Shown here piece after piece: positions 13,401 to 44,051 of a stretch of DNA of 64,000 nucleotides. Under the pieces are notes generated by a model. The model saw only the letters and a program-made list of their open reading frames with translations. It was not told the DNA's origin and ran no database searches. The position numbers and the translations under genes are program-made. The stretch lies in contig NW_026262637.1 in the NCBI RefSeq assembly GCF_021869535.1, forward strand, positions 8,990,001-9,054,000. The letters run 5' to 3'. The DNA comes from Mytilus californianus (lineage: Eukaryota). The stretch's first letter is position 1, and every line of letters begins with the position of its first letter.

Positions 13401-13443
13401 TGGCAATCTTTTCTATTTCAGAAATACTCAGTTCAGCTGACAT
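10438..13443 (-). CDS. fem-1: FEM-1-like ankyrin repeat protein, copy 2; exons 13443-12205 and 10881-10438 (560 aa)
   Basis: Colinear with copy 1 (about 79 substitutions in 413 exon-1 residues by manual count); donor CAG|GTAATT at 12205/12204, acceptor TTTCAG|GTG at 10882/10881, phase 0. Confidence 0.88.
11225..11675 (-). mobile_element. Degraded Penelope-like 3' fragment in fem-1 copy 2 intron, at the same position as in copy 1
   Basis: Shares CTGCTCCACAT(G/A)TGGCACC, CAATTGGAACATATC and AAGGAAATCATGA blocks with 983-1490. Confidence 0.6.
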
Positions 13444-20555: not shown

Positions 20556-20955
20556 TCATGTCTGTTTAAATATATCTACTAGTCCGTTGCCTCTTAGATA
20601 CTTTTTATACTCCAACAACATTACATCGTCATAGCGACGCAACAGGACTGTTCTGCCATTTATATTGACCTGACCTCCCGCTATTCTGTCACGTGCTGTT
20701 TTACTATCCAATAGAATAACCCATCGAAATGACATCGCCAAATACTGAAGAGATTTAATGTGAAAGTCTCCAAATGACGTTAAATGAGTTCCTAATTGAT
20801 TATATACATCTTCGTGGGAAGCACGACTTCCACCCAAGTCGAAAGAAATAGCATTTGGGAGTGGTTCCGGTGGTGATCGTGGTGGTCTTCGTTCTAAATT
20901 CTTTGACATTTCGGGATCTCTTTTGTGACAGATCAGTACATATCCATTTCTTAAT
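20556..20955 (-). CDS. RRM-like domain terminal exon C (ZCCHC3/retroelement ORF1p-like fold); upstream exon not identified
   Basis: Open frame from acceptor TTCAG|A at 20955 (phase 2) to stop; clearly homologous to 35657-36044 (FDLGGS.ASHEDVY, KSLQY..MSFRWVILLDSK, LRRYDD); predicted beta-alpha-beta-beta-alpha-beta pattern by eye. Confidence 0.7.
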
Positions 20956-23438
20956 CTGAATTTAAAATAATACTCGCATCAGTTGCATGCTTGCAGACTA
21001 TCTATGTTAACACGCTATATATATATAAATATGAAGTGATATTGAATTTATTGCAATTAACCTTGATTTGGATTATTTTCTGGATGTAAGCAATTTTACA
21101 TGATGGCATCAACCTAGCAGGAGAATTTATTTCAGTTATAACAAAATATTTTATTAGTGGTAAAAAGAAAGGAAAAAGTATTCTTATTCGATGCAAGTCA
21201 CATGTTTTGGTTTCTGTTAACTTATTTTTAATGTAAAAGCAGTATAAATATACCACTGAAAGTTTATCATCTGAGTAAGGATAGGTAGAATGTACTGTTT
21301 TGAAAATTGTTTTGACCACAAGATACCCAATGGATACGATCAAGTTGTTTAATCAGAAGTCTTTTTCCATGTTAATGAAAAGATTCGATTACCAACGGAA
21401 TTGAACTGTGGTATTTATATCTAGTCATCAGATCCCGCGATTAAGAGCCTGACATATGGTATATACACCTGTCTATTGTCGATGACTATGTTGATCTCTG
21501 ATCATATGTCTTTTAGTTATTTGTGTCGTTGCTTTGGTGTCTCATAGACGTATACCCCTAATCTTTTATTTCATACAATAATATGACAAAGCAATAGTTA
21601 TTGACAGATAGGTCCAGCACAATAAACCATGATCGTTCTTTTTCATTGCATATAGGCAGGGATATTATCTCACTGCCTCTGCTGTTTACTAGAAATTAGA
21701 CAAATATAAAGAAATAAACGTTAGCATGTACATGTACTTACCAAATTCACGAATTAAAGAATTTGCCTTTTAATTGATTTGAACAGTTTCCGATGAGAGT
21801 AGTCACTTAATACTATGTTTTCATGCATGCCATATTCCAGAAAAACCCAGAACATTTTGCCCTTACAGTTGCATTGTATGGTTTAGTTATGAACAAAGGA
21901 TGCTATTTTAGGACAGGAATAAGTTGCATTAAACATCGTTGAATTATTCAGATATGTTTATACACAGGTTTGATTAGAATCGCACTGGTACAATAAGAAG
22001 TTAGTCCCAGGAGTGCAACTTGTGCTAATAAAATCAATTTTATTACATATTTCCATGCTACAAAAAATATTATATTGTTCACTTATTTGAGGTCGATTTC
22101 TTGAATGTACGTTCGTGAATATTTCATATTACTAATGCATTACGTTTGATTAATTTCTAAGCAATCTATCTGGTTTAATAATTATCTAAATTAAATTATA
22201 CCATTAAAAAAAATATAGAAAAATATGTTGTCATAATTAAGAAATTTTTAAAAGGAAATAATATAATTTTGTTATGCAGCCATAGGGATGGACATTACTG
22301 CTATGTATTCCTTAGTATGCGACCGCTCAGAAGGAGGGAGTATACTAGTTCACCGCTGTCCGTGTGTCTGTCCAATGACATTTTTGTCGAATTGTTTTTA
22401 GGAACTGCAAATCAGAACTTCTTGAAATTCTGGGCAGGCTTCGTGTGAGCATATATATATATATATACAAGTCTAAATTGAAAACAACGTTCAAACCTAT
22501 GATTGCGTTGGATAAAAACCGCAATTTTTATACGTGTATATATATATATATATATATACTATACCGTGTGGTTAACTTTCATATTCATTACTCACCAACT
22601 TCCTGTTAATCTTGTAACACCATGTCAATTTGACCCTGTATGAGATGTTCGTCGCATTGTCTCATGAACTACAAATAAGAGCTTCCTGAAATTTGATATC
22701 AAGCTTCACCTGAGCATGTTCTGTAGAGACGTTTTTGATTTTTAAAAATGAACGTTGTATATACTGGTTAATTATTAATTCAAGGATTTCGTAACTTTCG
22801 TTTTGAAATTTTGCTGAACCTGTAGAATCGTATTATTCTATTTTTTTCACAGTATTTTTGTTTATAAAGCCCGTAAATTTAGATACGATCCCAGCCTCGG
22901 AAAGTTCGTTAGTCCTTTGAATAATCTTATTTTTAAAGGATCTCAATTTAAATATACGTATAAGCCTTAGTATCTTTGATTACTGTTTTGTGCACTAACA
23001 CTACACAATTATGTTCGTCAAACAAAAACATAACTATAAAATATGTTTTAATTGCCACAGGTTTTGACCAGTATATACTTAATATGTTTATCCCTGGTGT
23101 AAGTGTTTTTGTACGTCAAGGAAATATTACTTTCAATGAAACTCGAGACATCACTGCATATATATATTCGATTTGTTTTTGACAAACGATACAAAATTAA
23201 TTGTCTGCTTAACATAATTTAAATGTAATTTTGTGTGAAACAGACAAAATTAAATTCATAAATTTTAAGGATGCATGAAACAGATTTGAAAAACAATGGT
23301 AACAGATTCAACAATCCAAGTATTAAAAGATTACTCCCTTTAATATAAATAAAGAGCCCCAATTTTATAGTTGAATTTTAACTTGAAATCCAATTGAATC
23401 CCTACGGAAGCCGATAAGGGTCATTCAAAAAAATATTT

Positions 23439-23586
23439 ATGTCGCAATTACGACATAGCATGTCGTAATAACGACATAACTATGTCGTAATTTCGACATA
23501 GCATGTCATAATAACGACATCACTATGTCGTAATTACGACATCGCTATGTCGTAATAACGACATCCTTATGTCGTTATAACGACAT
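23439..23586. repeat. Array of seven 18-bp palindromes (ATGTCGTAATTACGACAT consensus) separated by 3-4 bp
   Basis: Units start at 23439, 23460, 23482, 23503, 23525, 23547 and 23569. Confidence 0.9.
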
Positions 23587-26500
23587 CGCTATATATATAT
23601 ATATATAAAACAGTATGTATTATGATTGCCAAGAGACTATATAACACAGAAATTAACAACTATAGGTCATCATAATGCCTTCAAAATGAGAAAAGCCCCC
23701 ACATAGTCAGCTATAAAAGGCTCCGAAATGACAAATGTTTAACAATTTAATTCGAACGAGAAAACTAACGGCTTTATTAATGTACAAAAAATGAAAACAA
23801 CTACAAATATGTTACACGGCAACAAACGACAACCACCGAATTACAGGCTGCTGATCGCTATGTCATAATTACGACAACATTAGCGTTGTCACTTTTTGAG
23901 GCGATAGAAAATTAAAAATGGTCGTCAGTGAGGGCAAAGTTTGAAGCGTAAAGATATTCATCTTTTTTTGGAGAATAATGAACACTAAATGCAATCAAGC
24001 TTAATTAAAGTTATTTACTTGCACATACTAGAACTTTATTTTATAATCAAGTCAAATGAGACCCAGTTGCACAGGGGAGCGATTCGGGCTTCTTGGAGCC
24101 TCTAGTTATGTTTGGCATGTACATATTCGTGTAAAATATGACTGCATTTCCATTGCAGATTCTGAAGAAGATGAATTTTAAGCTTTTCCAAATAAAGACT
24201 GTTAAACTTTGGACTCCTAGTCCTCAGACCCATGGACCTCTGTACCTTCATTTGTACACAATGGCCTACTGATGCTTGATGCAAATTATAACTGCATTGC
24301 TACTGTTGGTTCTTTATGAGATTCTTACAGCGTCCTCCCCATTGAAGCCTGTATTAAACGTTAGACCCCAAGTTCTTTAAACCAATGTTCCCGAGGACAA
24401 CTATTTCTACAAACTTAGGGGAGGGTTAGGTTCCCGCTAACATGTTTAACCCCGCCACATTCTGTATGTATGTGCCTGTCCCAAGTCAGGAGCCTGTAAT
24501 TCAGTAGTTGTTGCTTGTTGATGTGTTACATATTTGTTTTTCGTTCATTTTTTGTACATAAATTAGGCCGTTAGTTTTCTCGTTTGAACTGTTTTACATT
24601 TCTTATTTCGGAGCCTTTTATAGCTGATTATGTGGCATGGGCTTTGCTCATTGTTGAAGGCTGTACGGTGACCTATACTTGTTAATTTCTGTGGCATTTG
24701 GTTTCTTGTGGCAATCATACCACATCTTCTTTTTTTATATTTAATCCTCATCATATAAGGATCATCCATTCTCTAAGATTTATCCAATATGGCCTGTAGT
24801 TCTTAATGAGAAGATTTTCAAAGCTTTTTCCATTGGAGCCTATGTTAAACTTTAGACCCCTAATAATCGAGCCTAATGGGTCCCCTGATCTTCACCTATC
24901 ACCTAAGGAACTTGTGTCTCGTACTCGAAGTGGTATGCGAGCGATTGCTATCGTTTGTTGTCCGTCGTCGTCTGTCGTAAGCGTGTTTTAAAAATCTCCT
25001 TTGAAACTACTGTACAAAATTCTTTAAAAGTTAGTTTGATTTTTCCTTGTTAAATGTTTCCTTCACAAAAGGCGTGCTTTGATTTTTGAATCCTTAAAAA
25101 CACAGCCGCTGTTATTAACTTGAAAATATAGGACATAATGGTCACACATTAGTTTTTTGATAATGTCTCGAATATCGTTACATTTATCTCAAATCTGTTG
25201 AGGGTTCATCATGACAAAATGGACCTATGCCGAAAATTTCAGAAAGATCAGTTTGACCCATATCTAAGTTGTGGCCTCTAAAACATTTTTTGGGGATAGC
25301 TACATGTATTGTCATCACTTGAAGTCCGTCGATTTTGACTGGCAACCAACAGCATGGACACTGTTACTAAATAAAGGCAACAGTAATATGCCGGTGTTCA
25401 AAGGTCATAAATCGATTGAGAGAAAACAAATCCGGGTTACAAACTAAAACCGAGGGAAACATATCAACTGTAAGAGGAAAATAAACGAACAACAGGAACA
25501 CTAAAGTGAACAAAAATAAACCCTTAACATACATAGAAAGAACTATTTGATAACAACTGTCATATTCCTGAATTGGTACAGGCCATTTTAAGAACAAATG
25601 GTGGGTTGAACTTGGTTTAATGGCTAGCCAAACCTCCCGCTTTATGACAATGTTAAAAATGGCGCTGAAATGATAACACTACGTGACAGAAATACAGATC
25701 AAACACAAGCAAGACCATATATCACAGAGAAACGCACAAACATATAATATACTACAGTGTAGTAATAGTCGCAAAACATGTAAACTGCAGAACAACAGCG
25801 AACATATTTCATCAACGACAAACACCACAGGATATAAAAAACAGTTAAGCGCTTACGTAACTCACATGCAATCTCGAACTGTATGCAGTTATTTCCACAA
25901 TACTATACAAAAAGACCACATAGCGAAATAGCAGAATTTTACCTCTCCTGCGACGAACGTCATAAATAGCGAAACTTTAGGAATTGATTTTGCGGCGACG
26001 GCTGCTAAACTTTTATCAACATTTTGTGATTTTTGTAATCTTTAATAAAAATTTAACGGTAAATACAGACGACGACGGACGACAAGCGATTGCAATAGCA
26101 CACATAATCCTTCTGGTACTTAACACATCTTCTTGATGTGATCTACATTAATGCCAAATATAAATATAGAGGCTCCAACAAGCCTGAATCATTCACCATT
26201 TCAATGGGTCCCATTAGACTTGATTATGAAATAAAGTTATATTATGTGCAGACATATAGCGTAACTAACTTTAATATTAATTAAGCTTGATTAAAATCAG
26301 TGTTTATCATTCTCAAAAATGAATATGTTTCGATAGGGTTTTGATACAAACTTTGCCCTCACTGGCGGCCATTTTTAACTTCGGATCAGCTCAAAACGTA
26401 AAAACTCTTTTTAAGGACCTGGATACAAGTCAAAATCATTGAATTAAGTGTTTAGGAGATCATTAAATGTGTGGAACAGTCGGATCAATTGTTTAATTAT

Positions 26501-26830
26501 TAAAATGAATTGTATTATTAGCGAAACAATGAATAACCTTGCAGTTCTGTTGGCGATCGGAATCGGTGTCAAAACACAACAGACAATGTCCTCCAAACGT
26601 TTGCTAGATCTGCCAGCATGGGTTCTGTCTGTTTTTCTGTTCATTAAAGTGCGTTAGAACTTTCAGTTTGAAGTTCTTGTTCATTGGAACAAAGGCAACT
26701 TAAAACAGATGTTCCATAATCTTTATAGCTATTTGTTTTACTCCAAATTTCACGCACTGTGCACTGTATATTTACATCCGAGACTACTATAACACATGTG
26801 TTATAATAGTCGTGTTATAGTAGTCTTAAT

Positions 26831-27373
26831 TAGATATAAGAAGATGTGGTATGAGTGCCAATGAGACAACTCTCCATCCAAATCAAAATTTATAAAAGTA
26901 AACCATTATAGGTAAAAGTACGGTCTTCATCACGGAGCCTTGGCTCACACCGAACAGTAAGCTATAAAGGGCCCCAAAAATTACTAGTGTAAAACCATTC
27001 AAACGGGAAAAACCAACGGTCTTATCTATATAAAAAACGAGAAACGAGAAACACTTATGAACCACATCAACAAACGACAACTACTGAACATCAGATTCCT
27101 GACTTAGGACAGGTGCAAACAAATGCAGCGGGTTTAAACGTTTTAATGGTACCAAACCTTCACCCTTTTTCTGAAACAATAGTGTAACATCACAACATAG
27201 AAAGACACACTATAAAATATCAACTGAAATAGCTTTATTCAATCAAAGGACATATAAACACCACTGAACATACACTGGACAAATAAATTTGACCTATGAT
27301 ACAATGTAAATACAAAATAAATAAACTAAGGGAAGAATAATAAAAGTAACATGTTATATCGGTAAGAAATGTT
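26831..27373 (-). repeat. Inverted copy of the 14897-15442 repeat
   Basis: Reverse-complement identity with 14897-15442. Confidence 0.85.
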
Positions 27374-28724
27374 CACATTCAGAACATGAATATGCATTGA
27401 CGCTGGATTTTGGTAAACACAATACATGTAAAGATATCACTACATATCAATGAGAATATAAGTTTATGGATTATTTGTTTATGAGTTAATTTGGTTCAGC
27501 GCAATTAAATAAAATACCACTGAAAAAACTGTTCATTTAAGATTTGACAAATGGATAGGAATTGAAAACTGTGCACTTATACTATCTATTGGTTAGAAAA
27601 TATTTGGTCATGTTTTATGAATATTTAAAGCCCGAGTTTTAAATGTTCCTAATACATGAGAAAGTTTTGTCTGACCAATATAGAACATATTCACACCTTC
27701 GAGTAACATAAAAAATTTATCCTTTCCCAATTTTATTAATCAAACCTTAATATGAGTTCACTTTGAAGAGTTACAATGGCTAATAAAAGACTGAGATGTA
27801 AATCATATTCAATATAAAAATAAGATGTGGTATGATTGCCAATGAGACAACAATCCACCAAAGTTCAAAAAAGTGGATGTAAGCAATTATAGGCAACTGT
27901 ACGGCCTTCAACAAGGAGATAAATCCATACCGTATAGTCGGCTATAAAAGGCTTCGACATCAAATTAAAATATGAACCAATTCAATTCAGAAAACTAACG
28001 GCACATAAAGAATCCTCCCCTTACCAGCTGGAACAGTGGTGTAACAGTTCAACATAAGATCAAACTATAAAAATCAATTGAAAAGGGCGAATTCACTGTA
28101 CCATATGTACTTTTACCATACATATATTTAAAACACATATGTCATAATAATTGATACCGAGAGTTTTTACTTACTTATTTAATCCTCTTCCTGCATACTT
28201 GCACATGAGGCCACTACCAAAGCCCTCCACTGTTGCCTGTCTTGTGCCTTTCTTTCTGTTTCATTCCCATGATTCTCAGTTTACTCTCTATATTGTGCTT
28301 CGCCATGTTTCTATCGTTCTCCGTCTCTTTCTTTTCTCCTCTGCAGGTGTCCATCGAAGAGCTATCTTTGTTATGTCATGTTTGTCTTTTCTTAGAACAT
28401 GGCCAATCTATTTCCAAGAGTGTCCTCCGTTAATTTCAGAATTTAAGGGTCATAATACAAAAGCTACAGGGCCAAATCCAGAACTATTGAAAGGGACGGA
28501 ATTCTCGATAAAAAATATATATATAAAAAATTGGACGATTGTATACAAAAATGTATTAATTCCGTGAAAAACGTAAGGTTTTTTTATCGGCGATCAAAAG
28601 GGGGGCGTACTCCCCCTACGCCCCCTGAATCCGCCACTGATTTGTTGTCGTTGATGGTTACTACTAACATTATCAAAATGATATATATATATATACGAGT
28701 TTTCATTTTTTTTTTAGACGATAA

Positions 28725-30360
28725 ATGGCTACTTCAGTGTTGCCTTATATTTGTGACATTTGTTATGGTCGACATATAACATAACAACAAATGCCGAATA
28801 CTGGTGTTCCGAATGTGAGGAAGGGTTATGTTTGGTATGCCAAGAACACCACACTATTTCAAAATCTACAAGAAACCACGAGACAATTAATATTGACAAT
28901 TTCAAGAAATTGCCGCCATCAATTGCAAGGACAAAGAGTCACAGCGAAGAACATAAGCGTCAGTATCAAAATTATAGCCCACATCACGGAAGTTTATGTT
29001 GTCCAATTTGCATCTGTGAAGATCATAAAGAATGTACAGGTTTATTGGCAATAGAAAATGTAACAAAATCTTCAAAACATTCAGTTCTGTTGGAGAATTT
29101 AGAAAAGACATCACAAACCCTTAAAAAACACATAGACATGATTGTTGAATACAGACAAAAGAGTCTCTTTAACGTTAAAAAAACCCAGCAAGAACTGTTT
29201 AGTAGTGAGACTATAAACCTGCGTAAAACAATAAATGATCATTTGGATATGTTAGAAAGAAAACTTATCCAAGAATTGTATGCTGGCGCGGAAAAGACCT
29301 CTGGCAAAGAAAAGAACGTCCATGAACTACGGGAAAGTGTCATTGTGGTTAAACTTTATGCATCTGACATTCAAACATTAATAGGAACCAAGAAACTTGA
29401 AACAGACATATTGGAAGTAGAAAGGTATATACAATCTTTATCAAAGAATGGCGATTTGGATGAAGTCATCCTAGATTGCAGTTTTTCCAATGTAATATTA
29501 GATGTGTTGTCTGCTCCTGTGTTCGGTCAGGTGTATTTTCGGACAGAGCCTTCATCTTTCGTTCCTACAGAAGAATTAAATCAACACGCACAGATCATTA
29601 ACATACCAACGCAAGGAAAAATGATTAACGATATCACTATTACACTTATTTCAATGTTTGAAATGCAGAAGCTAGAGCCGGTATGCAATCGACGTCAACG
29701 GATGTAGTTTCTGCAAAAATGGCAAAATAGCTGTTGCAGATTGCGGAAATAGAAAAGTGACTATTTTAAATTCAGATGGAACTTTATATAAAGATGTCTC
29801 TGTTGGTTGCGAACCTAGAGATGTGACGGTCATCGATGAAAGATTTATTGCTGTCACTACCGACAAGAGTGTAGACATCTTCAATTCAAAAACGACACAT
29901 CTGCACAAGTGTATACAAACCAAAGGCGGTTGCTATAGGTTACAACATGACGAAGGCAGATTAATATGGTGTGAAAGGTCAAAAGGAAAACAGATGATGA
30001 AGATTTCGGATTCTAAAATTTCCTCTCTCGTACCACATGATCGTATGTCAACGTGGGCATGCGTACACGTAACAAAATGTGGAAGACGAATTGTTTACTC
30101 TAGATATAAGGAAAGTACAATTATCTGTCAAAGTCTTAAGGATAAAAAATACAGATGGAAGTTTCAAAATGATTAGATAATAAAATGTCCTAGATCAATA
30201 TTTGAACATTTTTGTCGCGGTAAATCATAGTGTGGTAGTATTATCACCAGACGGACAACAACATAAAGTCGTGCTCAGTCAGGATAGCGGCATCCATCAA
30301 CCACGGGGAATTGATTTAAATTCTATCACGAACATCTTGTTGGTGGTAAATAGGAATGCT
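28725..30360 (+). pseudogene. TRIM-like B-box/B-box/coiled-coil/NHL-propeller pseudogene (no RING)
   Basis: MATSVLPYICDICYGRH..YWCSECEEGLCLVCQEHH (B-box), LCCPICICEDHKEC, coiled coil, then NHL-like IAVADCGNRKV, EPRDVTVIDE, VVVLSPDGQ, QPRGI. Disabled by a 5-bp duplication near 28780, a frameshift near 29690, TAG at 30174-30176 and a repeat insertion at about 30357. Confidence 0.82.
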
Positions 30361-32567
30361 GCATTTGTTTGCACCTGTCCTAAGTCAGGAATCTGATGTT
30401 CAGTAGTTGTAGTTTGTGGATGTGGTTCATAAGTGTTTCTCGTTTCTCGTTTTTTATATAGATAAGACCGTTTGTGAGAAACTGCAAATCAGAACTTCTT
30501 GAAATTTGGTGACAATTTCATGTGGGCATGCTATACCGTGAGGTGCACTTTCACATTCATCACTCACCAACTTCCTGTTTGTCGCATACTTGTATATTTT
30601 AACACCATGACCCTGTTTAAAATTTTTGTCGCATTTTCTCAGGAACTACAAATTCATGAAATTAATTCGATATCAAGCTTCATTTATGTTAGTAGAGACA
30701 TTATAGATTCAAATGAACGTTGTTACAGGTTATGAAGTCAGGGAATTCGTTACTTCAAATTAATTAAAACGTTTACTAAATTTTTTTATAGATACAAAGA
30801 TTTGGTTTTGAAATTTGGCTGCACGTGTAGATTGAATCTTACTACAAACGGGATGGTAAATCCTATTTTCACAGTACTGTTGTTTATAAAGCCCGTACAT
30901 TTAGATACTATCCACGAACAAGAGTTACAAAAGCTTCGTCCACATGGATTGACCATGGTTTATTGTAATGTGCCAGAATTTGTTTTCTTATTTCAATTCC
31001 AAAATATTTAATCAAAGCAACAGCAAGTTAATGACAATCGCATCCATCGCCCATCAACTTCATGTTTACCGAAAAGATAAGTCAGCAGTAACTCGATTAC
31101 ATTTCAACTTGTTTGATCTTTATTTGTCTTTCCAATATTAAAATATAAAAAAGGTGAATTTTAATTCAGAAAAATACAATGTATGTACCATTTGTCTCTT
31201 TTTAAATGTAAAATCTCAAAATTTTAATAAGTACCCTTATCAAAGATAAGAGGGGAATTAAATGTCAAATGAGGCACTATATTACATATTTGTTAATAAA
31301 TCTGAGAGATGATACAGATTTCTGTACGCACGATACGCTCGAGACCAAAAGTTTGCATATGAAAGCCGCAAAAAAAGTTTAAGAGTTTTCACATGTAAAA
31401 GCCTTAATGGAACTAAATAACTTGCCATCTTCGTGCAAATGCATGGCAAAAAGTAAAATAGCAAAAATACCGACCTATGAAAATTCAAAACGGAAATCCT
31501 TTATCAAATGGCAAAATCAAAAGCTCAAACACATAAAAATGGCAGAAATCATCGTCATACATAATCAAGCCAAACATCATTTTAAAAAAGAAGGGTCAAT
31601 GTACGATCATGTACTCGTTTTAAAGCTAATGATTAAAATCAGTCGAAAAATGCATCTTTTCGCGATATTTCACAGTTTGACGTTGCGAAAAAAAACAATT
31701 TACGTTAGCGACGGCATTACCTCCCCTGTAAGTTGTAACTGTATCGGGAATAAGTAAAATAACAAAAATACCGAACTCCAAGGAAAATTTATAAAGGGAC
31801 AGTCCCTTATCAAATGGCAAAATCAAAAGCTCAAACACATCAAATGAATGGAAAACAACTGTCATATTCCTTACTTGGTACAGGCATTTTCTCGTGTAGA
31901 AATGGTGGATTAAACCTGGTTTTAGTAGCTAACTAAACCTCTCACTTGTATGACAGTCGCATGGACAGTGAGTGGCAGTTATCTTGTTTGTTGTCGCATT
32001 GCTGATCATCATCCTGAATATGCATCAAATGTTTACTACATGGCGTCAAACAATTCTAGGTAACCAGTATAGCTGTAATTTAGAAATAGTCCTCTTCCTT
32101 CTGGTGGTATGACCCATACTGTAAGTGTATCAGTGTTTGTACTTTTGGCATATTTGAGTTGTATGTATCAATAAAAAAAATAAAGTTTTTGATTAAAATT
32201 ATCTTCTGAAGGGTATTGTGGTGATAGCATGTGTATAAGGTTTTTGAAAGTTTTTTTTTCGATGTTTCAGAACAGAAATTGGCATTTTAGATGTATATTT
32301 ATGGTATATTTTGATAAGAAGTGGTATGTATTAAAGAAAGACAATTTCTCAAAAAAAATTTATCACGAATTTATTTTGTTGAGTTGAGTAAAATTTATAA
32401 ATTAATGTTCATAGTTGATATGTAAAATGACAGCCAGTTAAAATGGATCACTTAGGGGAAGCGTATTTTGAAGATACTGGGTCAGTTAATAAACATTAAT
32501 TTTTAATAACACATTATATAAATCATCCGAAGCGGTTTATGGATTAACCTTAATAAGGAACGCTCAA

Positions 32568-33205
32568 ACCTAAACACTTAAAAGCCAAGGATGTATGAAT
32601 ACGTATGAACGTTAGGAGCCATATGACATAAACACTTAAAAGCCAAGGATGTATAAATACGTATGAACGTTAGGAGCCATATGACCTAAACACTCAAAAG
32701 CCAAGGATGTATGAATACGTATGAACGTTAGGAGCCATATGACCTAAACACTTAAAAGCCAAGGATGTATGAATACGTATGAACGTTAGGAGCCATATGA
32801 CCTAAACACTTAAAAGCCAAGGATGTATGAATACGTATGAACGTTAGGAGCCATATGACCTAAACATTTAAAAGCCAAGGATGTATGAATACTTATGAAC
32901 GTTAGGAGCCATATGACCTAAACACTTAAAAGCCAAGGATGTATAAATACGTATGAACGTTAGGAGCCATATGACCTAAACACTTAAAAGCCAAGGATGT
33001 ATGAATACGTATGAACGTTAGAAGCCATATGACCTAAACACTTAAAAGTCAAGGATGTATGAATACGTATGAACGTTAGGAGCCATATGACCTAAACACT
33101 TAAAAGCCAAGGATGTATGAATACGTATGAACTTTAGGAGCCATATGACCTAAACATTTAAAAGCCAAGGATGTATGAATACGTATGAACGTTAGGAGCC
33201 ATATG
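32568..33205. repeat. Minisatellite, 11 x 58 bp
   Basis: Unit ACCTAAACACTTAAAAGCCAAGGATGTATGAATACGTATGAACGTTAGGAGCCATATG repeated head to tail with single substitutions; 638 bp = 11 x 58. Confidence 0.95.
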
Positions 33206-33990
33206 ACAAAAAAGGAACCTAAAAAGAATAGCCTTATTCATTTGAGGTCAACTTTGCATGAGAGAACAGAGGCGTATTTAGGGGGGACAAGGCGTCCAGT
33301 CCCTCCTTATTGAGCTGCATATACATGTATGGTTAATGCATAGACTTTTACATTTAACACTCGAAACTTTGCCTTGTTTGTCCCCCCCCATCCCCCCGCA
33401 AACCCACCCAACCCCCAATTTTTTAAAAATCCTGGATCCGCATCTGGGGTGATGGAGTCTAAATTTCTTCAAAAGTTCTTAATTTATCAGCAGAGAACTT
33501 AGAAAATACGTTATAAATCATGTCAGTACTCAAACATGGCTACTGAGCTGAAGGAATGTTCAAGAATTTGTCTATATCAATTTTTAAAGATTAACATTAA
33601 ACAGTATCTACAAGGACGGTTTATCCAGAAGAGTTGATTCGCCGAGTAAAAAAAAAACAGTTCATCTAGAGGAATATTGTATTCAAAAGTTTAAACTGAC
33701 TTGAATTTAGAACCTTATCTCGTTAAATTAAACTAAACTTTGAATTACGCTCCCCGAATATAATGTGTTCTATCTAGTCAGGCAGGTGGACTCATATATA
33801 CCAAGATATGAACGTTGCTATATCCACTGTCCATATCTTACTAGCGATTAAATGCAGTATCTTTTCTTTCGTAATCATCCAAGCAGGCCTCGTCTATGAA
33901 AAAAATACATCCCACTATGTTACATAGACATATATCCTCTTTTTTGCGATGTCTCTTTTTACAAAAGGATAAAATTAGATATAATTCATC

Positions 33991-34630
33991 TAACGTCACA
34001 GTACCCAAATTGCACCGAGTACCCAAATTACACCTATTCAACAAAAATAGCAGCGGAAATCTTACAAGTTTTCTTTGAGACTAAATAATTTGTATTTTTA
34101 TGATTTGACATTATACACGTCTTTCAACATAGGTAAATATATTTAAATATACACTAAACGTTCACAGTATATATCAACAGATGAATCATTCCCTGGAAAA
34201 AGTAAATCTACGGAAACGTCGCCATGCGACGTTCTCAAAATGTCATCTTTTAAAAATGAGCAAATTAAAAAAAAAGTCATGTTACAAGCATCCATTTCTT
34301 AAAAAAAAAATAGTAAGCATGGAATAATGTCAAATTGTTCAAATATTTGAAGAAATAAAACAAACATCTGTTATTTGATTTTTAAGGATGTGAATTTAAA
34401 CATGGGTGCAATTTGGGTACTCCTCATAACAGAATCATGGATCGTTTGGAGGTCGGTTCAAACCCATTTTGTCATGAATCAATATGGATTCAAAATTAAA
34501 TTGGTGTAACTATATAGTAAATAAGGATACTTCTACAAAATAAACACAGAATGGAAACTTTTGTCTGGATCATAAAAAAACGTAGGTGAAAAAACTGTCA
34601 AAATAGGTGCAATTTGGGTACCCTCACGTT
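33991..34630. mobile_element. MITE-like element with GTACCCAAATTGCACC terminal/subterminal inverted repeats
   Basis: AACGTCACAGTACCCAAATTGCACC at left, GGTGCAATTTGGGTACCCTCACGTT at right, additional motif copies at about 34020 and 34405. Confidence 0.6.
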
Positions 34631-35656
34631 ATATATTTTATTAACAGTTTTACGTAAATGGAACCTTATTTCCCATTATTTTTCTTTCTTTATAGATTAA
34701 AATTTGAATATATATTGTATGTATAAGAAGTATTGATTTGTGACTTCTGGTATAAAATTTGATTGTTTTTGTTATGTAACTTTGTCTAACATGCTGCAAG
34801 TATATTTATGTGTTCATGTTTGCATTGTCGGTCTCCTGGTGCTTGAAATGTGGCTGTGGACTAAATGAAATAAAAGTTTCAATTGTATTGTTTTTTTTTA
34901 TTAAACTCCGAGTATTTTCCTGCGTATTTAGAAAGTAGTTCAAATTAAGGGATACTTCACTGGAGCTTGGACTGTGAAGACCAACTTAAAGAAATAAATT
35001 TCATTCTGTTTGTTGTAAAATTACAATACATAAACATACTGATTGATTTTACACCACGAACAGTAAAAACAAAAGTAAAAGCAGTAAAACTGATAGAACA
35101 ATTCCAAAACATATGCATAAAGTATTTTCAACATAATGCTAAAGAGTGTTACAATGTCATGAAAAGAGCTTTAATTTCAAAATAATTCTTTGATTAAAAA
35201 CTACAAATGCAAAAGATAACAAGAATCACCAAAAATATTGGACAGTACAATAAGGTCACAACAACCAACAACGTTCGACTCCGCAGAAAAAATAGAGGTA
35301 CGAACAAAACAACATCCAGATAGTCTGAATAGGGTCGGACACAAAATGTGATGGGTAAACGAGTTTTACGTGCTCTCTGGATTGACTATTAATATATCAG
35401 CATAACATATAGACTTGTCTTTAGGACATAGTGTGGTCTTATAAGAAAAATTTCGCCCACTTGTGGAGTAGTATCTGAGAGTAGTTTATACGTAGTTAAT
35501 AATTGTGTATTTGTGTCAGACTCTGTACAATGTGCTGACAAGTCTCTGTGATATATATATACATGCGTCTGTGTAGCAGGGATATTTAGATGCACGAAAA
35601 TACTGGTTTAGTATCTCATCCCAACAAGTATAATAACTACACCAGGCGTGTGACAA

Positions 35657-37800
35657 TTAGTAATCTTTAACAGTATCAATAAATCCACTTGCTCTCGAAG
35701 ATTTTTTATATTCCAGTGCAATAATATCATCGTAACGTCTCAATATCACTCTGTTGCCATTGACGATTATAACACTTCCGGCGAGCAAATCACGCGATTT
35801 CTTACTATCTAATAAAATGACCCATCTGAAAGACATTGGAAAGTACTGAAGAGATTTCATGTGACACTCTTTGTTTGAATATAACAGACTTTTCAGTTGA
35901 TAGTATACATCTTCATGTGAGGCGTGACTTCCGCCCAGATCAAACACCAAAGCATTTGGAATAGGCTCTGGTTGTGACTTTGTTTCACTTTTAGCGTACT
36001 TTTTAATTTCTGCCATTACGTCCTCAAAGATTTCATTAGAATACCTGTAAATTCAAGAATAATATACAAGATTCATTTTTTAGTATCTGTAAAATTGTGA
36101 ATACTAAAATATTGTTTAACTGTTTTGGACTGATAAATACTGAAGATATACCTGTTTAGTCCTCTTATTTTTGGGTAAGGGGGAGGGGGAAAGTTTAAAT
36201 ATAGTCCCATGATTTGATATGTATCCGTCAAATTTGGAATAGGCTGTATTTAAACTTAAAGAAATAAACAAAATGACAAACCATTCACAAGTAACTTCTA
36301 AGCAGTGTTTGCAGAATCTTGCTATCCTATATTTGGTAACCTGTTGACTTTTCAAATAAAAATTGTACCAATTATTAATTTTCGGCATATTCATATCGTA
36401 AAATGTCAGCTGCAAATTATACAATATGAAGCCTTTTTTTGCTAGTAAGCGCACAGGGCGTGTTTAAATGAAGCACATTATCTTACATGTAGAGCAGCTG
36501 AAATTTAAAAAATACAGGGATTTTTAATTCAAAACGTATATATCATACAGGTAGTACATCGTAAACAGTCCTTTCCATCTATTTTTCAAAGTTGTTCCTG
36601 TGTTGTGCTGTTACACCACTGCTGTAGGTTAGGGTAGGGTTGAGCGCTCATATACATGATTAACCCAGATTAATTCTTTATAGGTGCCTGTCCGATACCA
36701 GGAGCCTGTAATTCAGTGAATGTCATTGGTAGCTGTCTACCATATTTGTTTTTCGTTTATTGTTTATCATTAATCAGGCCGTTGATTTTCTCGTTTGAAT
36801 TATGTTCATATTTTGTCACGCTGCGGCCTTTTATTGCTCACTATACGTTATGGGTTTTGCTCATTGGTGAAGGCGAACAGCAACCTATCGATCTAGTTAC
36901 TATATTACACCCTCGTCCTTTTCTCTCTGGTGGACGATTGTTTCATTTTACGTCTTAAACGGTGATATTGGAGTTCGTGTTGAGGTGGATACTGAAGTCT
37001 AAGGGAAGACCATTAAACATACTAGCCCTTTTCCATACCTGCCCTGTTATACCAAGATCTGGATATCTGTCAAAGGGCTTTAGTTCGAGGGCAGATATAT
37101 CAAGATTTTGGGATAATTCAAGGGAGACATGGAAAGGGAATACATTATCACTTATTTGTGTGCATCAATAAAAATGAATGATCAATAGCCGAAATAAATG
37201 TGTATTTATATTACCTGTGACATAGCTTTTTTTAAAAGCAGTTAAGTTCAGTTCAAACTAATTCAACAAATTTTGCATGGGGTGTCTTTATCTTGAATCA
37301 GATACACCAACACACAATGGCAACGGTCAGGAACGCCAACTGTGCAGCAATTGCCGTTGACGAATCGCACCTATGACGTCATTGACGGATCAAAGACATG
37401 ACGTCATAGTCAAAAGCCTTTGATCTTGGAAGCTGCATTTTTTCTCACTTGCACATACATAATTATAAAAATGAATAAATTACTTGAAAACAAGTATCAC
37501 TTACTTGACTTTTTCTTTCTTTGGTGCGCGAGGTGTGTTTGATTTGGAAGATTTATTAAATGTAGAAACGCTTGACACGGACGATTCCAATTCTGCGTTC
37601 GTAGTTAACTTCGCCGATCCTTTCGTTCTGAAGGAATTTGATTTCGTCAGTATCTTAGGCTTAACACACTTTAGCTTAGTTTCACTTTCTTTTAAAGTAG
37701 ATAATGTTGTTTTCGTCTTTGCCTTTCGTCGCCATTTACGAGCGAACTTTGTCGGTCGGATTTGTTCTTGGATAACAAGCATAGCGATTCTACGAAACAT
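35657..37800 (-). CDS. Gene B: basic Lys/Ser/Thr-rich exon (37800 or acceptor 37851 to 37505) spliced to RRM-like exon 36044-35657 (about 227 aa from ATG 37800)
   Basis: Perfect donor AA|GTAAGT at 37505/37504 (phase 2) and acceptor TTACAG|G at 36045/36044 (phase 2) join the two ORFs in frame; terminal exon homologous to 20556-20955. Confidence 0.72.
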
Positions 37801-38550
37801 TTTGAGTATGCGACTGTTTCTATTGCACAGAACGTCAGTAAGTATACAATCCTGTTTATACACAAACTATTACGTGTAAAAAAGAAATGTTATTTAAGTT
37901 ATATAGGTATTCTAAGTAGCTAGTGGAATAAATGATCACTTAAGATTCTAAACAGATAAACTGTTTTTTTAGAATAAAGTAAAATCAATTAAAAGATTTA
38001 ATTTGTATGTATGTGGGTTCATAATTTAAATATCCTGGGTTTTTTAAATATTAAACTTTTCATGTATGAAAAACACTTGAGATGTCTTTTATTGTATATA
38101 GATCAACCGAAAGATAAATCATTATGATTAAAACACGAAAATGTCATAAAATAGTCAATCGTCTCCGTCTAAAAGTTTCTTATCAACTTTTTAATTGAGT
38201 GATATGATACAACTTTTAAAACTGTAAATAAAGTTTTAAAATTTGAAAATAAGGCCAGGCATAATTATATCTGTATATCTGAGTTAAGCGTTTGTTTCTT
38301 TCTACCCTAATTTTCATTATGTCCTTACGTTTTATTGATTTGTGTGGACACGGAATAAAATCGTCATCCCATTGAAACAAATAAAAATTTATTTCAGCAA
38401 AGCAAAACCAAACTTGAGAAAGAATATCCATGCCTACTTACTTTATTTTTAAACACGTACACATGATTTTTTGGCTTAGCTTTGGTATGTACGTATTTAA
38501 GTAATAACTACTCTACCAATATGATAGCAGAATTAACAAAAAAAAGATTA

Positions 38551-38563
38551 ATTGATTGGTTGG

Positions 38564-38597
<34 letters not shown>
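38551..38597. repeat. (GATT)n microsatellite
   Basis: Visible GATT/GGTT tetranucleotide run. Confidence 0.9.
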
Positions 38598-40644
38598 TAT
38601 TGGTGTTTACCGCCACTTTCAGCACTGTTACATATTTTGTGGCGGTCAGTTTTTATTGGCGGAGGAGGCCGGATTGAACCACCGACCTTCGACAGGAAAA
38701 CTAACAAAAAAGAACATTATTATGTATACAAATTTTGTTTCCGTTTCTTATTATCAAATCAGCTTACACATTGTACTATTGGTCATGCGCTCTTTCTCAT
38801 TTTGAGAATTAACGAGTTTCTAGAGTCCCTAACATTCTAATTTAATACTTCTTTCTTTTAGTTTAACATTATGGTCTGTTACCACATCTGTATTGCAACA
38901 GGCGTCCGTTTGACTGTGCCGGAAATATACATACGAATCCACGTCCGGTCGGACGTTAAATCCGAAGCCTCGTATAGGGAGAGTGCCACGCTCTGCGAAC
39001 TGGTTGAGGTGTCAGTATGTGACTTGGTAGATGGCAATAGTTCTGTCCCTATCCAACACACCCTAAGTTTCGAGTGGAAGTCGAAATTGTCAACCCTTAA
39101 TCCCGGTCCTTCCAAATAGCAGTCTGTTTATGAAGTGTATTGTTAATTTGTTGTCGTTCTGAAAAATGTATGAAATATTTTCTACTGGACGTTAATCAAG
39201 TAACAATCAATCTTAATGAAAGGCTTTTCACAGGTCAATATGTTTCCCGTATGTAAAAATTGGTTCCGTGTACTTTGGCAGCTTGTCCCTCTGAATTATC
39301 CCGTGCACTGTAATGTTTTGAGGGGGAGTCATTTCCTCTCTCGATTTGTAGAGAATGGTGTGATCATACCTTAATGTGATTATCTAAGGTAATTATATTT
39401 GAAAACGCTTGTTATGATAAAAGCTAACTGGCCCTGATATATCTTCACTTTACCTCGTCTTTGTGGTATTTACCGCAGTTCTTGTACTGCTGTGCCCCCC
39501 CCCCCCCCCCCCTTCCTCCTCTTTTTTTAGGTGATGCTGGTAATTGACATTTCTTTAATTCTTATATACTTGTATGATCCAGTTTCGAAGTTGGAATACT
39601 TACACGGATATCAGACCTCATATTAGATAATGCGTTATTGAATTTATGTTTAGGTAAACGTTTCTTTGAATAAATAACATGAGAAAAAAAAATGGAAATG
39701 GGAAAACTTTAAAAAATTTAACTAAAAGATCAGTGTGTTATTTCTATGTGTCGAATTGCATGCACTTACTAGAATAACATACGAATGTTTTTTGAAAACT
39801 AATTTGCAACGGAAATCTATACCTTGCAATTGCAACAAGCGAATCTGTGAGCTACTGCTCACTAATGATACCCCGCCCGCTAAAAGTATAAGGTAAATAG
39901 GAAGTTGTTGAGTGATGAATCTGAAAACGCATCACACGGTAAAGCGGACTTATATAAACCCTGAAAAAAAATTTCAGAAATCCTTGTATTGTAGTTCCTG
40001 AGAAAAATGTGACGAAAAATATTCATGGGACGGATTGACAGACAGAGGTAAAACAGTATACACCCACTTTTTCAAAGCGGGGGTATAATTATCTAATGAA
40101 CATATTTTACTAGAAAATATAGATTTCGTTGATATTCGGGGAAAATATTTGAACGTTTATGCATGAGTTGTTTATAATCCAATTCAAAACGTTTCAAATA
40201 GATAATGAAATTTATTCAAAAACTTAATTGTGTCATATGTATAAAAGGGGATTTGGTAACGTCAATGAGACAGCAACCCAGGAACAAATATAACCAACAT
40301 ATATCCAGTGGACAACCGTAGAGGGTATATATACACTATGTCAAGGTATATGTTGTACATTGTATCTGTATTATGGGTTATATGAATCTTTGTTGATAGT
40401 ATTTTTATGATTTCTGAATTAAGTTTGATGTATTGTTTGACTTGTAAAATTATGTCGTACAATTACAAGTAAGGGTTTCTATATCTCTGTTACCAGGTTA
40501 TGGTTATCCTTAGATAAATTGATATTTCATTCGTTCTAAAAGTATTAAGTTTTATTCAATTGTGTTTTGAATATTTTGGCTATAGCTGCTATATATATCC
40601 CTTTTGTGTGTTCTATAAAACAGTTTATGATCAAGTTTGTCCAG

Positions 40645-40748
40645 TTGTAAGAAGTGGAGAGTGTGTCACCTGTACTAATTGTAAGAAGTGGAGAGTGTGT
40701 CACGTGGACTAATTGTAAGAAGTGGAGAGTGTGTCACGTGGACTAATT
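40645..40748. repeat. Tandem repeat, 3 x 34 bp, just 3' of gene A
   Basis: TTGTAAGAAGTGGAGAGTGTGTCACGTGGACTAA starts at 40645, 40679 and 40713. Confidence 0.9.
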
Positions 40749-40789
40749 GCACAAGACAATAAATACAATGCATATATTTGTTTTATTAC

Positions 40790-43700
40790 TTAATTTACTT
40801 TGACAGTTTTCATAATTTTGGGTGCCGATTTAGCTTTTTTAAGAGAAAGTGGTAATTTCAAGTCCCTTTTCTCGCCTCTAATCTTTTCTAGATACAAATA
40901 CGTTTGGTGTTCCCTGCTTGTTACCTCGTCTAAGGCTTTTATAACAATTTGGACGTCATCAAGTTTGAATCCAGCACGAACCATGTGATCAGCTTCCACT
41001 TTGCTTGAAACTTCCGCCAACCATCTATTTCTGACAACAATATCGCCAGCCCGTACAGACAATGGGTCAAACTGAAGCTTTAAGATATCACAATTAAATT
41101 CGTTCACAAGCATATCTTTGACCTCTTTGTGGGAATACTTTTCGTTCTCTGGTAAACTGAAGCACACCACAAGGGGGCGTTTTTCTGGACAGATTTTGAG
41201 TGTATGTGTAGCCGGGTAACATCTGTCTTCATATTTACTTGTATCCCATTTTTTGGGTGGAACCGGCGATTCTTCGACATCCCTATAGGCACCTGTTGAT
41301 CTAACAGAATGGAAATATAATTTAACACAAATAGAACTTAACGCCAAACAAGCAACAAAAATAAGTTGAATGTAGGTAGTAGAAATCTACTTTTACGGAC
41401 GAAGAATAATTCATGATTCATAGGCACAGCTTGGGGAATGGACCCCCCCCTTTTTTTTTAAAGTAATTTTTTGTAATATTTTGCGCTACGGGGAATGGAC
41501 CCCCTTTTTCTATTTTTGTGTGTGCAAATATTCTGTAATGTGTTCTTGCTCTTTTTCCATACGGTATTACAATAACAGTAGTCAGTTATAAATTTTGACC
41601 ATCTATTACCGTATTATTTTCCAAAATGATAATAGAGGATCAAATGAAAGTTATAAACAACTGTTATTGTAATATCGTATGGAAAACAACAAGAACACAT
41701 GTACAATCAGTTGATATATTACAAAATGCTTAAAAAATAGAAAAATGGTGTCTTTTTCCCTTACCGCCTTTGGTAGAATTTAGCTCCGTCGTAATTATGT
41801 TGCTGTTTTTTTATTTTTTAATTTTTATCAAAAACTGTCTCAGCGTAACAACTAAATTACATTTTAGTTAAATTATTAATTAAGGGCATATATACAGTTT
41901 TGATCCCACGCGGTGATTATTTTACGAAAATTTGGATACAAGCTATTTTTAAACTAGTCAATTTAAATTTCATTCCTTTAAACAGACATATGTAACTTTT
42001 TTTATTTCAAAAGATAATCGCAATCAGATTTTTGTAAACACATTTGGAATATCGTCTTTACATAAAAAATTGAAAACAACACATTCAATAATTGCATGCG
42101 TCCGAAGCGCTTTTCTGGATTTACCTTTATCAGGAACGCTCAAAGCCAAATATTTGAAAACAGAGGATGTATAAGTACCGAAACAGTTGAAGAGCTTTAT
42201 GACAAAAAATACCTAAAAAATTACCAAATCCATCTAAGGTCAACTTTGCCTGAGGGAGTTGAAACCTTAGTTTCTTTATAATTTCAAAATTTATAAACGG
42301 ACAATTTAAGAAAGGTTTGTTATAAATCATGTCAGTACCGAAGTACTGACTACTGAGCTGAGTATACCATAAGTTTGTGTAACAATTCTTTGGAAATAAT
42401 TTATTTCCATTTTTTTTTTCATAATTTAAAAAAAAAAAAACGGCATTTTTGGCTGTATATTTATCTAATTTAACTTGCAAAATACCATCGTTTCCGCAAG
42501 TTTATTGAATTCTGTTTGGTATTAAATTAATAATTAAGATCCATTTTGTTACATCTGGTGATCCGTTTATTTGGCAATCGCCAATGGCAGTCAGCAGGGT
42601 TTAAGAACATCCGTTGTTCGACCTATTAGTCAAATGCGTTTTGTTAAAATGTACTTTTTCACTTTTTTGGTCTTTTGGAAAATGTTGTTTGTGCTGTATT
42701 TAGACCCCTCTACCAAGAAATTTGTTTTGCATGCACACGTATAAAAATTGCGGTTTTTATCCAACGCAATCATAGGTTTGAACGTTGTTTTCAATTTATA
42801 CTTGTTTATATTTTTTCGTTTGGGCATGTATTATATTTGCCTTCGGGTTTATATGATCCGTTCATCCTATTTCGACTCTTTAAAATTCAAGAGTCTATCC
42901 TAAATTGAGGTAAATTATATGGCCTTCCAAATACCGTTTCGATTCCTAACAACACTGTAGGATATAAATTGAATATTCTTTGGTGTATAAAACGCTGAAA
43001 GTAGCATATTTTGTACTACAGTGCATAATATAAAGATTAATATAGTTCAAATAAAGTATATGTGTTGACTCCCACGTATATTTTTTTGTAATCATATCCC
43101 ATTTTTACACTAGCTGATGGCTTAGTTCCGTCTATTCAAAATATTTTATTGTTCAAATATCAAATCATGACAAATGTACATTTAAACAAAGGGATTGGAC
43201 AAAAGGCAGTGCCTATACAAATCCTTTCCCATACAAGATGGATTGAATAACATGATAGTATATAATTTTCTGGATTAATAAACCTCCTTTTCTAATTAAA
43301 GTCCATGTCTGGTGATTTTTTTTCAAGAATTTAACAATCAAAAATATGTGTATTTATTTATTATATACATATATAATATTGTATTTATATAGTGGATATG
43401 TTACCTTTTAAGTATATCAATATCTGGGTCACTGACCTCACTGGCTTCCATCTTTGTAGTGGTAATGATAGTTTCGTCTTTATCTTTGATCTCTGTAACA
43501 TTCTTTTTCAAATGAGTGGCTGGTGGCTTAGCTCTAGCTTCTTTTTCTCTGAACGGATCTCGAAACCCTAACGAACGAATGTTTTCAGGTAGTTTATAAT
43601 CGGAAGCTGCCCTATTGTCATCTGTAAAGGAAACTTGTCTTCCTTCTACAGCTGCCGACTTTGCCCTGTAAACTCCGCCATTTCGTTCATGTTCGCTCCT

Positions 43701-44051
43701 ACGGACTAAACAACCAGTTTTCGGTCTGACTATGTCGCCAGTTTCTTTATAGAATTTCCATTGAAAGCTATCTATAACCGGGTTGTAGGATAAAACTGAT
43801 TTAAAACCTTTCAACTTTAAAATCTTGCTCATCTTTGTACGTATTTCATTTTCATTGCCATGCATATAGGCTTCCAAATATTTGACGTCTTGACTTAAAC
43901 ATGCTTTGTCAAACATATCATTGATATTTACATTGCTTACCTCTGCAGGCCTCGTAAAAAAAGAAGCGGATCCTGCTCTGTAAGAACTTAATGGTATATG
44001 GTATTTTGATTCTATATTACGTAAAATCATAGCTTGGCTTGATGTAGGCAT
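40790..44051 (-). CDS. Gene A: exon 44051-43405 (frame open from about 44186) spliced to RRM-like exon 41300-40790 (about 385 aa)
   Basis: Donor AG|GTAACA at 43405/43404 (phase 2), acceptor TCTGTTAG|A at 41301/41300 (phase 2). Terminal exon shows VVCFSL, SHKEV, LQFDP, RW...S, DEV..RE..TYL, a distant match to the other two RRM-like exons. Confidence 0.65.

Follow-up and report, generated by a model that had tools for sequence, protein, structure and literature searches.

Three minus-strand genes of Mytilus californianus as probable divergent members of the animal C19orf81/DUF4732 family

A 64,000-nt stretch of the genome of the mussel Mytilus californianus (RefSeq assembly GCF_021869535.1, contig NW_026262637.1, positions 8,990,001 to 9,054,000 of the forward strand; hereafter the window, in whose numbering positions are given) carries three minus-strand open reading frames (ORFs) at 20556-20909 (ORF1, 117 aa), 35657-36016 (ORF2, 119 aa) and 40790-41347 (ORF3, 185 aa), and raises the question of whether these are pieces of mobile DNA, a retrotransposon-derived module recruited in the mussel lineage, or members of an existing gene family. 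The genes to which they belong are called genes 1, 2 and 3; their order on the minus strand is gene 3, gene 2, gene 1. A first-pass annotation of the window had described the ORFs as homologous, which was borne out: ORF1 and ORF2 are 58% identical (E 1e-48), ORF3 shares 22-23% identity with ORF1 and ORF2 (pairwise E 4e-6 and 6e-6), and the motifs F.L, SH.(E/D)V, LQ(Y/F), RW, D(D/E) and E(Y/H) recur in all three. A six-frame scan of the whole window with a family hidden Markov model (HMM) found exactly these three copies. The same annotation had recognised no named gene, whereas RefSeq lists gene 3 as LOC127725956 and Pfam has the family as DUF4732 (PF15876), or C19orf81. The window very probably holds a tandem cluster of three paralogues of this animal family, the functional ones with the family layout. 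They are not a new kind of gene but members of a conserved, uncharacterised family.

A profile built from nine mussel sequences was searched against 1.84 billion protein representatives and retrieved 230 proteins at E<=1e-3, with 112 at E<=1e-10. In these matches the domain is almost always C-terminal, with a median tail of 4 residues behind it and a disordered N-terminal part before it. PF15876 was matched by 92 of the 136 domain segments at E<=0.01 (best 7e-45) and by 108 of them at E<=5, no second Pfam family recurs in this set, and P0171 and P0121 carry PF15876 in precomputed tables. Named members include bivalves (Pinctada, Ylistrum, Dreissena, Sinanodonta, Ruditapes) and gastropods (Elysia, Bradybaena, Physella, Haliotis, Lottia) and, beyond the molluscs, the leech Helobdella and a sea urchin. 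The cluster of one profile match (P0042, E 3.5e-19) holds the 'putative uncharacterized protein C19orf81 homolog [Strongylocentrotus purpuratus]', and alignment by hhalign of the gene 1/2 subfamily with the group of this sea-urchin homolog, Helobdella and their relatives gave 99.7% and an E of 7.5e-26. The best shape match in the ESM Atlas was to the 'Chromosome 19 open reading frame 81' cluster, in which 99% of members carry PF15876, with template modelling (TM) scores of 0.59 (query) and 0.55 (target) and a root-mean-square deviation (rmsd) of 2.9 over 130 aligned residues; the chordate C19orf81 cluster is known here through its Atlas label only.

The relatives share a signature, consisting of P-x3-P before β1, (V/L)CF, (T/S)H at the α1 cap, Q(F/Y), RW on β3, and YDD(V/I)..E(Y/H)..(Y/F) where the C-terminal helix begins. 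Column counts in the 136-row alignment were W 136, H 134, P 131 and 128, D 128, E 117, R 115 and F 111, and all three ORFs of the window retain the signature residues. A maximum-likelihood tree of the 136 domain segments divided at the midpoint root into two groups, supported at 98% in the Shimodaira-Hasegawa-like approximate likelihood-ratio test (SH-aLRT): clade I, with gene 3 and two loci on another contig, and clade II, with genes 1 and 2, the sea-urchin homolog and the leech protein. The tree was a quick search, of which only this coarse two-clade split is used.

Window exons were searched one by one rather than as joined gene models. Gene 3 corresponds to XP_052089219.1, 'uncharacterized protein LOC127725956 [Mytilus californianus]' (390 aa), which matches the window at 44051-43404 (residues 1-216, 100%) and at 41302-40793 (residues 216-385, 98.8%). 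Its first coding exon (43405..44051, minus strand; 215 codons and 2 bases) begins with MPTSSQAMIL at 44051 and ends at 43405 with the donor aag/gtaaca, and an intron (41301..43404, minus strand, GT..AG) separates it from a second coding exon (40799..41300, minus strand), which starts behind the acceptor gttag/a and contains the DUF4732/RRM-like domain at about 40808-41245. Donor and acceptor, as read from the sequence, are both in phase 2 with respect to the gene 3 ORF. The first-pass annotation had proposed the junction 43405>41300, and this is matched by the deposited protein and by a 1,210-nt Logan transcript contig, in which the blocks 44089-43405 and 41302-40789 are joined and the 2.1-kb intron is absent. 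In the RefSeq isoform, a donor at 40799 (aaa/gtaaat) leads to a terminal exon of 7 codons (38389..38412, minus strand; FGFALLK and a stop codon), which was located by six-frame translation and has an AG before it. Unlike this isoform, the transcript contig reads past the 40799 donor to the stop codon at 40790-40792, and so documents at transcript level both the splice 43405>41300 and the read-through stop at 40790. The second exon matches the family HMM with a domain E of 5e-62. The first exon encodes the motifs VNINDMF, KGFKSVLSYNP..F.WKF, RPKTG and IRSLGFR, and shares with clade I relatives V.(V/I)(D/N)IN(E/D)(L/M)F, KG(F/Y)..L(S/A)Y....(S)..W, RPKTG and L..LGFR; with these motifs it is more than low-complexity sequence. 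At the protein level it is single-copy in the genome, and an ESM Atlas feature search with it gave no usable match.

Gene 2 is built in the same way. Its first coding exon (37505..37800, minus strand; 98 codons and 2 bases) ends at 37505 with the donor caa/gtaagt, its intron (36045..37504, minus strand) is a phase-2 GT..AG intron, and its second coding exon (35657..36044, minus strand) follows the acceptor ttacag/g and carries the DUF4732/RRM-like domain (35660-36016) and the stop codon; donor and acceptor were again read from the sequence as phase 2 relative to the ORF. Orthologues of 224-230 aa are found in M. edulis (XP_071137585.1), M. galloprovincialis (VDI84293/4) and M. trossulus (XP_063402299.1), and their residues map to 37800-37504 and 36046-35660. 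These deposited proteins span both exons, in agreement with the junction 37505>36044 put forward earlier, and the first exon is 82-85% identical to residues 1-95/101 of the proteins of the three species. In a mytilid that is less closely related, a 1,071-nt contig encodes a 194-aa product (P0004) that also unites both exon types. The first exon is rich in S and T and strongly basic (pI 11.2, 26 K+R), and begins with MFRRIAMLVIQEQ in place of an MPTSSQ start, of which this may be a degenerate form. Upstream exons that are basic, of low complexity and end in phase-2 donors had been described for both genes; the donors at 37505 and 43405 hold and gene 2 is very basic, while the gene 3 exon is motif-rich. 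The second exon matches the family HMM at E 1e-41, and its DNA is single-copy in the genome, the sole other match being gene 1 (71%). A phmmer search of gene 2 against Protein Data Bank (PDB) sequences gave nothing significant. The last mini-exon of the gene 3 RefSeq isoform (38389-38412, minus strand) lies ~590 bp upstream of the gene 2 start codon (37800), and with this spacing read-through or common regulation of genes 3 and 2 is conceivable.

The N-terminal exons had been taken to be unrelated sequences to which the domain was fused. A start of the type MPTSSQ(A/L)(L/M)IL (variants MPTASQ, MPTLSQ and MPISSS) is, however, present in 26 of the 45 representatives with more than 100 residues before the domain, and in both clades. 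Introns of relatives were placed by a script that tested which GT-AG pair reproduces the deposited protein, and in both Dreissena (P0048) and Pinctada (P0014) a phase-2 intron came out behind the N-terminal exon. The C19orf81 homolog of the sea urchin has such an intron after the first exon and a second phase-2 intron inside the domain. Since the N-terminal exon and its phase-2 intron occur across the family, the mussel exons are not unrelated fusions. The plan of a functional family gene comprises an N-terminal exon for a disordered, basic region with short motifs (the widespread form of its start being MPTSSQ(A/L)xIL), a phase-2 intron behind it, and a C-terminal exon for an RRM-like domain of ~110-130 residues (β1-α1-β2-β3-α2-β4-β4') with a long C-terminal helix.

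Gene 1 departs from this plan, as its ORF (117 codons) encodes the domain alone. It matches the family HMM at E 4e-37 and has every signature residue, and in three species both the frame and these residues are intact, the M. edulis and M. trossulus copies being syntenic with it. An acceptor, ttcag/a, was read upstream of it, with the AG at 20956-20957 and the exon start at 20955 in phase 2 to the ORF. The AG and the T-rich tract before it are conserved in the three species, but the stretch from acceptor to ATG (20910..20957, minus strand) carries a 20-nt deletion in M. edulis, between the acceptor and the conserved ATG (20909), which shifts the frame and so argues that the stretch is not coding; the 'open frame' after 20955 is, judged from these alignments, most likely 5' untranslated region (UTR). 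Thus, of the three phase-2 acceptors with open frames in the first-pass annotation, those at 36044 and 41300 stand in full, and at 20955 the splice signal stands without the reading frame. No coding upstream exon was found for gene 1 between 20955 and 35600 in tblastn searches with the N-terminal parts of the gene 2 orthologues. If expressed, gene 1 would yield a domain-only protein of 117 aa. Contigs with a gene 1 orthologue (P0197) were genomic ones only, as they are collinear with genomic DNA and therefore not transcripts. In the domain tree gene 1 groups with a separate sequence from another source (P0016), which suggests that the copy is old.

Selection was estimated as the ratio of nonsynonymous to synonymous substitution rates (dN/dS), by the Nei-Gojobori method on the domain exons of three Mytilus species. 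Genes 3 and 2 are under purifying selection, with ratios of 0.09-0.25 (p from 1e-17 to 0.005) and 0.10-0.15 (p ~1e-6), respectively, and in gene 1 (0.55-0.69, p 0.23-0.34) constraint is relaxed. Gene 1 is either a small protein that evolves rapidly or a duplicate in decay.

Several of the results tell against reading the cluster as three functional members of the DUF4732 family. The ratio for gene 1 is not distinguishable from 1, that is, from neutral evolution, and no gene call corresponds to gene 1 in the assemblies of M. edulis and M. trossulus. In direct hmmscan searches, scores stayed below the Pfam gathering cut-off of 27 bits for PF15876, both for gene 3 (19.7 bits, E 1e-3) and for its orthologues P0001 (26.4 bits) and P0002 (25.4 bits), and genes 1 and 2 had no match to PF15876 at E<=1, with 13 bits for their relatives P0003 and P0004. 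The window genes are accordingly filed as divergent homologues and not as members at the Pfam threshold.

The M. californianus genome, of 1.65 Gb in 175 contigs, contains five family loci, the three in the window and two on another contig. These counts, together with the single-copy exons, agree with the earlier view of the ORFs as low-copy genes rather than parts of high-copy transposons, and because of them a transposon reading was excluded; copy number, synteny and selection were the grounds on which transposon identity of the ORFs was rejected. No ORF2 adjoins the ORFs, as had been stated: besides one another, they have a C1q-like gene and a B-box ORF as neighbors, and the nearest retroelement noted is more than 15 kb from the cluster ORFs. 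The same gene order, 3, 2, 1 and then a convergent C1q gene, is found in M. edulis and M. trossulus, where genes 1 and 2 are ~5 kb apart, compared with 15 kb in the window. Ylistrum balloti, a scallop, has a clade I gene of 432 aa (MPTSSQALLL...) and, ~2 kb after it on the same strand, a clade II gene (P0038, MPTTSQ...). The presence of a clade I and clade II pair in both Ylistrum and mussels indicates that the tandem predates the mussel-scallop split.

AlphaFold2 was run with family alignments on genes 2 and 3. The gene 3 model has a core with a predicted local distance difference test (pLDDT) score of 85-96 and a disordered stretch of 43 N-terminal residues, the gene 2 model has a mean pLDDT of 87.8 and a predicted TM score (pTM) of 0.74, and in both the topology is β1-α1-β2-β3-α2-β4-β4' and then a C-terminal helix of ~25 residues. 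Foldseek searches of the PDB placed U1A-type RNA-recognition motifs (RRMs) first (E 3e-4 to 4e-3). An exhaustive VIA-align comparison of the gene 2 model with 48,161 PDB representatives returned RRMs for all of the best 50 (Z 7.0-8.3), led by the Larp7 xRRM 7slq_B (Z 8.3, rmsd 2.0, 88 residues, model residues 19-119) and U2AF65 RRM1 (Z 8.2), with La, U1-70K and p65 also among these 50; by the tool's own note, a Z of 7-8 means a common fold and nothing beyond. The predicted structures thus give the C-terminal exon of genes 2 and 3 an RRM-like fold, and this suggestion of the first-pass annotation holds at the level of a shared fold.

What the domain does is a matter of more tentative argument. 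It is plausible, at somewhat less than even confidence, that it binds RNA or another nucleic acid as an atypical, third-helix RRM, with the basic tail and the N-terminal motifs providing affinity, localisation and partner recruitment. RNA would be contacted by the conserved R-W on β3, F on β1 and Q-F/Y on β2, the basic tail would add affinity or target the protein to the nucleus, and the short N-terminal motifs would recruit partners, possibly in germ cells. RNP1 has the consensus K/R-G-F/Y-G/A-F/Y-V/I/L-x-F/Y and RNP2 the consensus I/V/L-F/Y-I/V/L-x-N-L. Neither canonical motif is present in the domain, where β3 reads N-R-W-(I/L/V)-(I/V)-T and β1 reads (V/L)-C-F-x-(L/F); this absence, and a long C-terminal helix that may cover the sheet, weaken the case for RNA binding. 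A literature search on C19orf81 and its mouse orthologue 1700008O03Rik found expression and screen lists only and no functional work, which likewise lends the proposal no help, and no papers were found for 'DUF4732' or the MPTSSQ motif. C19orf81 is listed as a marker, by RNA sequencing of single cells (scRNA-seq), of human undifferentiated spermatogonia (PMC13003925), a C19orf81 antibody is listed in PMC6274646, and 1700008O03Rik appears in a bone-mineral-density screen list (PMC7822523).

The main rival on function is that the RRM-like fold serves as a protein-protein module, an occluded or pseudo-RRM that does not bind RNA, which we regard as possible though rather unlikely. Besides the missing RNP1 and RNP2, it is favored by the lack of an RRM_1 Pfam match in the three ORFs and 136 relatives, by structural matches whose best Z values denote a common fold only, and by the conserved amphipathic helix after β4 (YDDV..EY..[YF]), which could pack on the sheet. 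On the other hand, the invariant W and near-invariant R on β3, the F on β1 and the Q-[FY] on β2 resemble the RNA contacts of U1A, La and the Larp7 xRRM, the sheet face of the conserved residues being inferred from strand periodicity alone, and the attached tails are strongly basic, as in gene 2.

The origin proposed in the first-pass annotation was a domesticated RRM of ORF1p or ZCCHC3 type that the mussel lineage duplicated and joined to N-terminal exons unrelated to one another. The fold is indeed RRM-like, as in the ORF1p of L1 and Tx1 elements, an Atlas shape search returned an arthropod cluster with zf-CCHC in 51% of its members (TM 0.37/0.31), an Atlas feature search returned a cluster with some DUF4780 members at 0.87, and one family member matches DUF4780 at E 0.034. 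These last two results were judged too weak and the DUF4780 lead, on which no literature was found, was not used. Against such kinship, no C-x2-C-x4-H-x4-C motif occurs in any exon product, so the earlier remark that zinc knuckles are missing was correct. The three ORFs and 136 relatives also gave no match at E<=5 to PF23057 or PF23058 (RBD_ZCCHC3_1st/2nd), to PF02994 (Transposase_22) or to any ORF1 family, and the 50 best of the 48,161 PDB representatives include no ORF1p structure, the best structural neighbors being cellular RRMs. Loose genome scans with PF15876, PF23057, PF23058 and PF16012 also found nothing, but they were insensitive and missed the DUF4732-like genes known to be there, and their blanks therefore carry no weight. 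The copy number is five, the N-terminal exons are typical of the family, and molluscs and a sea urchin share the family together with its N-terminal motif and phase-2 intron, while the domain also occurs in an annelid. With this spread, any domestication would predate the divergence of bilaterians and would not be a mussel event. A recent domestication is largely refuted, and the proposed origin as a whole is very unlikely; the mussel genes are better described as divergent members of an existing animal family.

That the ORFs are transposon fragments, or dead pseudogenes open by chance, is scarcely credible, since the retroelements elsewhere in the window and the near-neutral ratio of gene 1, its lack of a coding upstream exon, its absence from the annotation of two congeners and its orthologue on genomic contigs only are set against strong purifying selection, annotated orthologues, single-copy exons and a spliced transcript for genes 2 and 3, and, for gene 1 itself, an intact frame and signature in three species and a grouping with P0016 that suggests an old copy.

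Several features around the cluster can be added. Genes 2 and 1 are separated by ~10 kb of additional sequence that M. edulis and M. trossulus do not have. In it, at 28760-30176 (plus strand), a B-box ORF (ANCHR-like_BBOX E 7e-6, zf-B_box E 4e-3) that includes a coiled-coil-like stretch precedes a frame break (29707/29757) and a 139-aa ORF, which together look like a RING-less TRIM-type fragment. Convergent with gene 1 are plus-strand ORFs at 17190-18019 with a signal-peptide-like start and G-x-y collagen repeats; a collagen and C1q gene occupies the syntenic place in M. edulis and M. trossulus, of which these ORFs are probably the orthologue. Two closely similar copies of a two-ORF gene (433/416 aa and 145/147 aa) are arranged in tandem at 140-3067 and 10438-13443 (minus strand) and look ankyrin-repeat-like by eye. 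Upstream of the gene 3 orthologue of M. edulis and M. trossulus, on the opposite strand, is a gene of ~1,760 aa whose RING, B-box and two Tudor domains form a combination of germ-line type. Pinctada imbricata and Y. balloti both have a gene for a histidine phosphatase (His_Phos_1) upstream of their clade I DUF4732 gene, on the other strand; no such neighbor was seen beside the Mytilus cluster. The other two family loci of M. californianus (C110:67216946-67217389 and C110:69876806-69877171) are 2.7 Mb apart and both belong to clade I; residues 146-305 of P0007 (305 aa, start MPTSSQTMIV) match one of them at 100% identity. The first protein search flagged one TAG within the match at C110:67.2 Mb; the ORF matching P0007 there is intact.

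The window thus turns from the site of a supposed domesticated ORF1p module into that of three divergent members of an existing family, one of them already annotated. To the description of that family are added an RRM-like fold with a C-terminal helix, the previously unremarked MPTSSQ peptide, a conserved phase-2 intron, and two deep subfamilies kept as a tandem pair in mussels and scallops. A wider proposal, which is speculative and at present more doubtful than not, is that DUF4732/C19orf81 represents an unrecognised ancient animal family of atypical RNA-binding proteins, with a third-helix RRM and a fixed plan of MPTSSQ(A/L)xIL start, disordered motif-bearing region, phase-2 intron and C-terminal domain, whose clade I and clade II genes have been kept adjacent and in the same orientation in pteriomorph bivalves since before the mussel-scallop split. 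That the two are kept side by side suggests joint action or co-regulation, for which the human expression data hint at germ cells as a possible setting. Handles on C19orf81-like proteins generally are offered by the R-W pair, by the MPTSSQ peptide and by the paired genes.

Three known systems can be compared with the mussel genes. Within the C19orf81/DUF4732 family, the clade I members whose names were looked up are all molluscan and have long, motif-rich N-terminal exons; gene 2 differs in having MFRRIAMLVIQ and a very basic tail in place of the MPTSSQ start, and gene 1 in having no N-terminal coding exon. With the ORF1p of L1 and Tx1 elements and with ZCCHC3, the mussel genes have in common the general RRM-like fold and basic flanking regions, but they lack CCHC knuckles and an ORF2 neighbor and number five copies per genome, and no coiled coil or trimerisation part was detected in the mussel proteins. 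Among RRMs with a third helix (the xRRMs of Larp7 and p65, La and U1A), the arrangement is likewise β-α-β-β-α-β with a helix after β4, although sequence identity to the mussel domain is just 6-12%; the xRRM 'RNP3' motif, Y/W-x-D/Q, was not seen in that form, and the DUF4732 family has Q-[FY] on β2.

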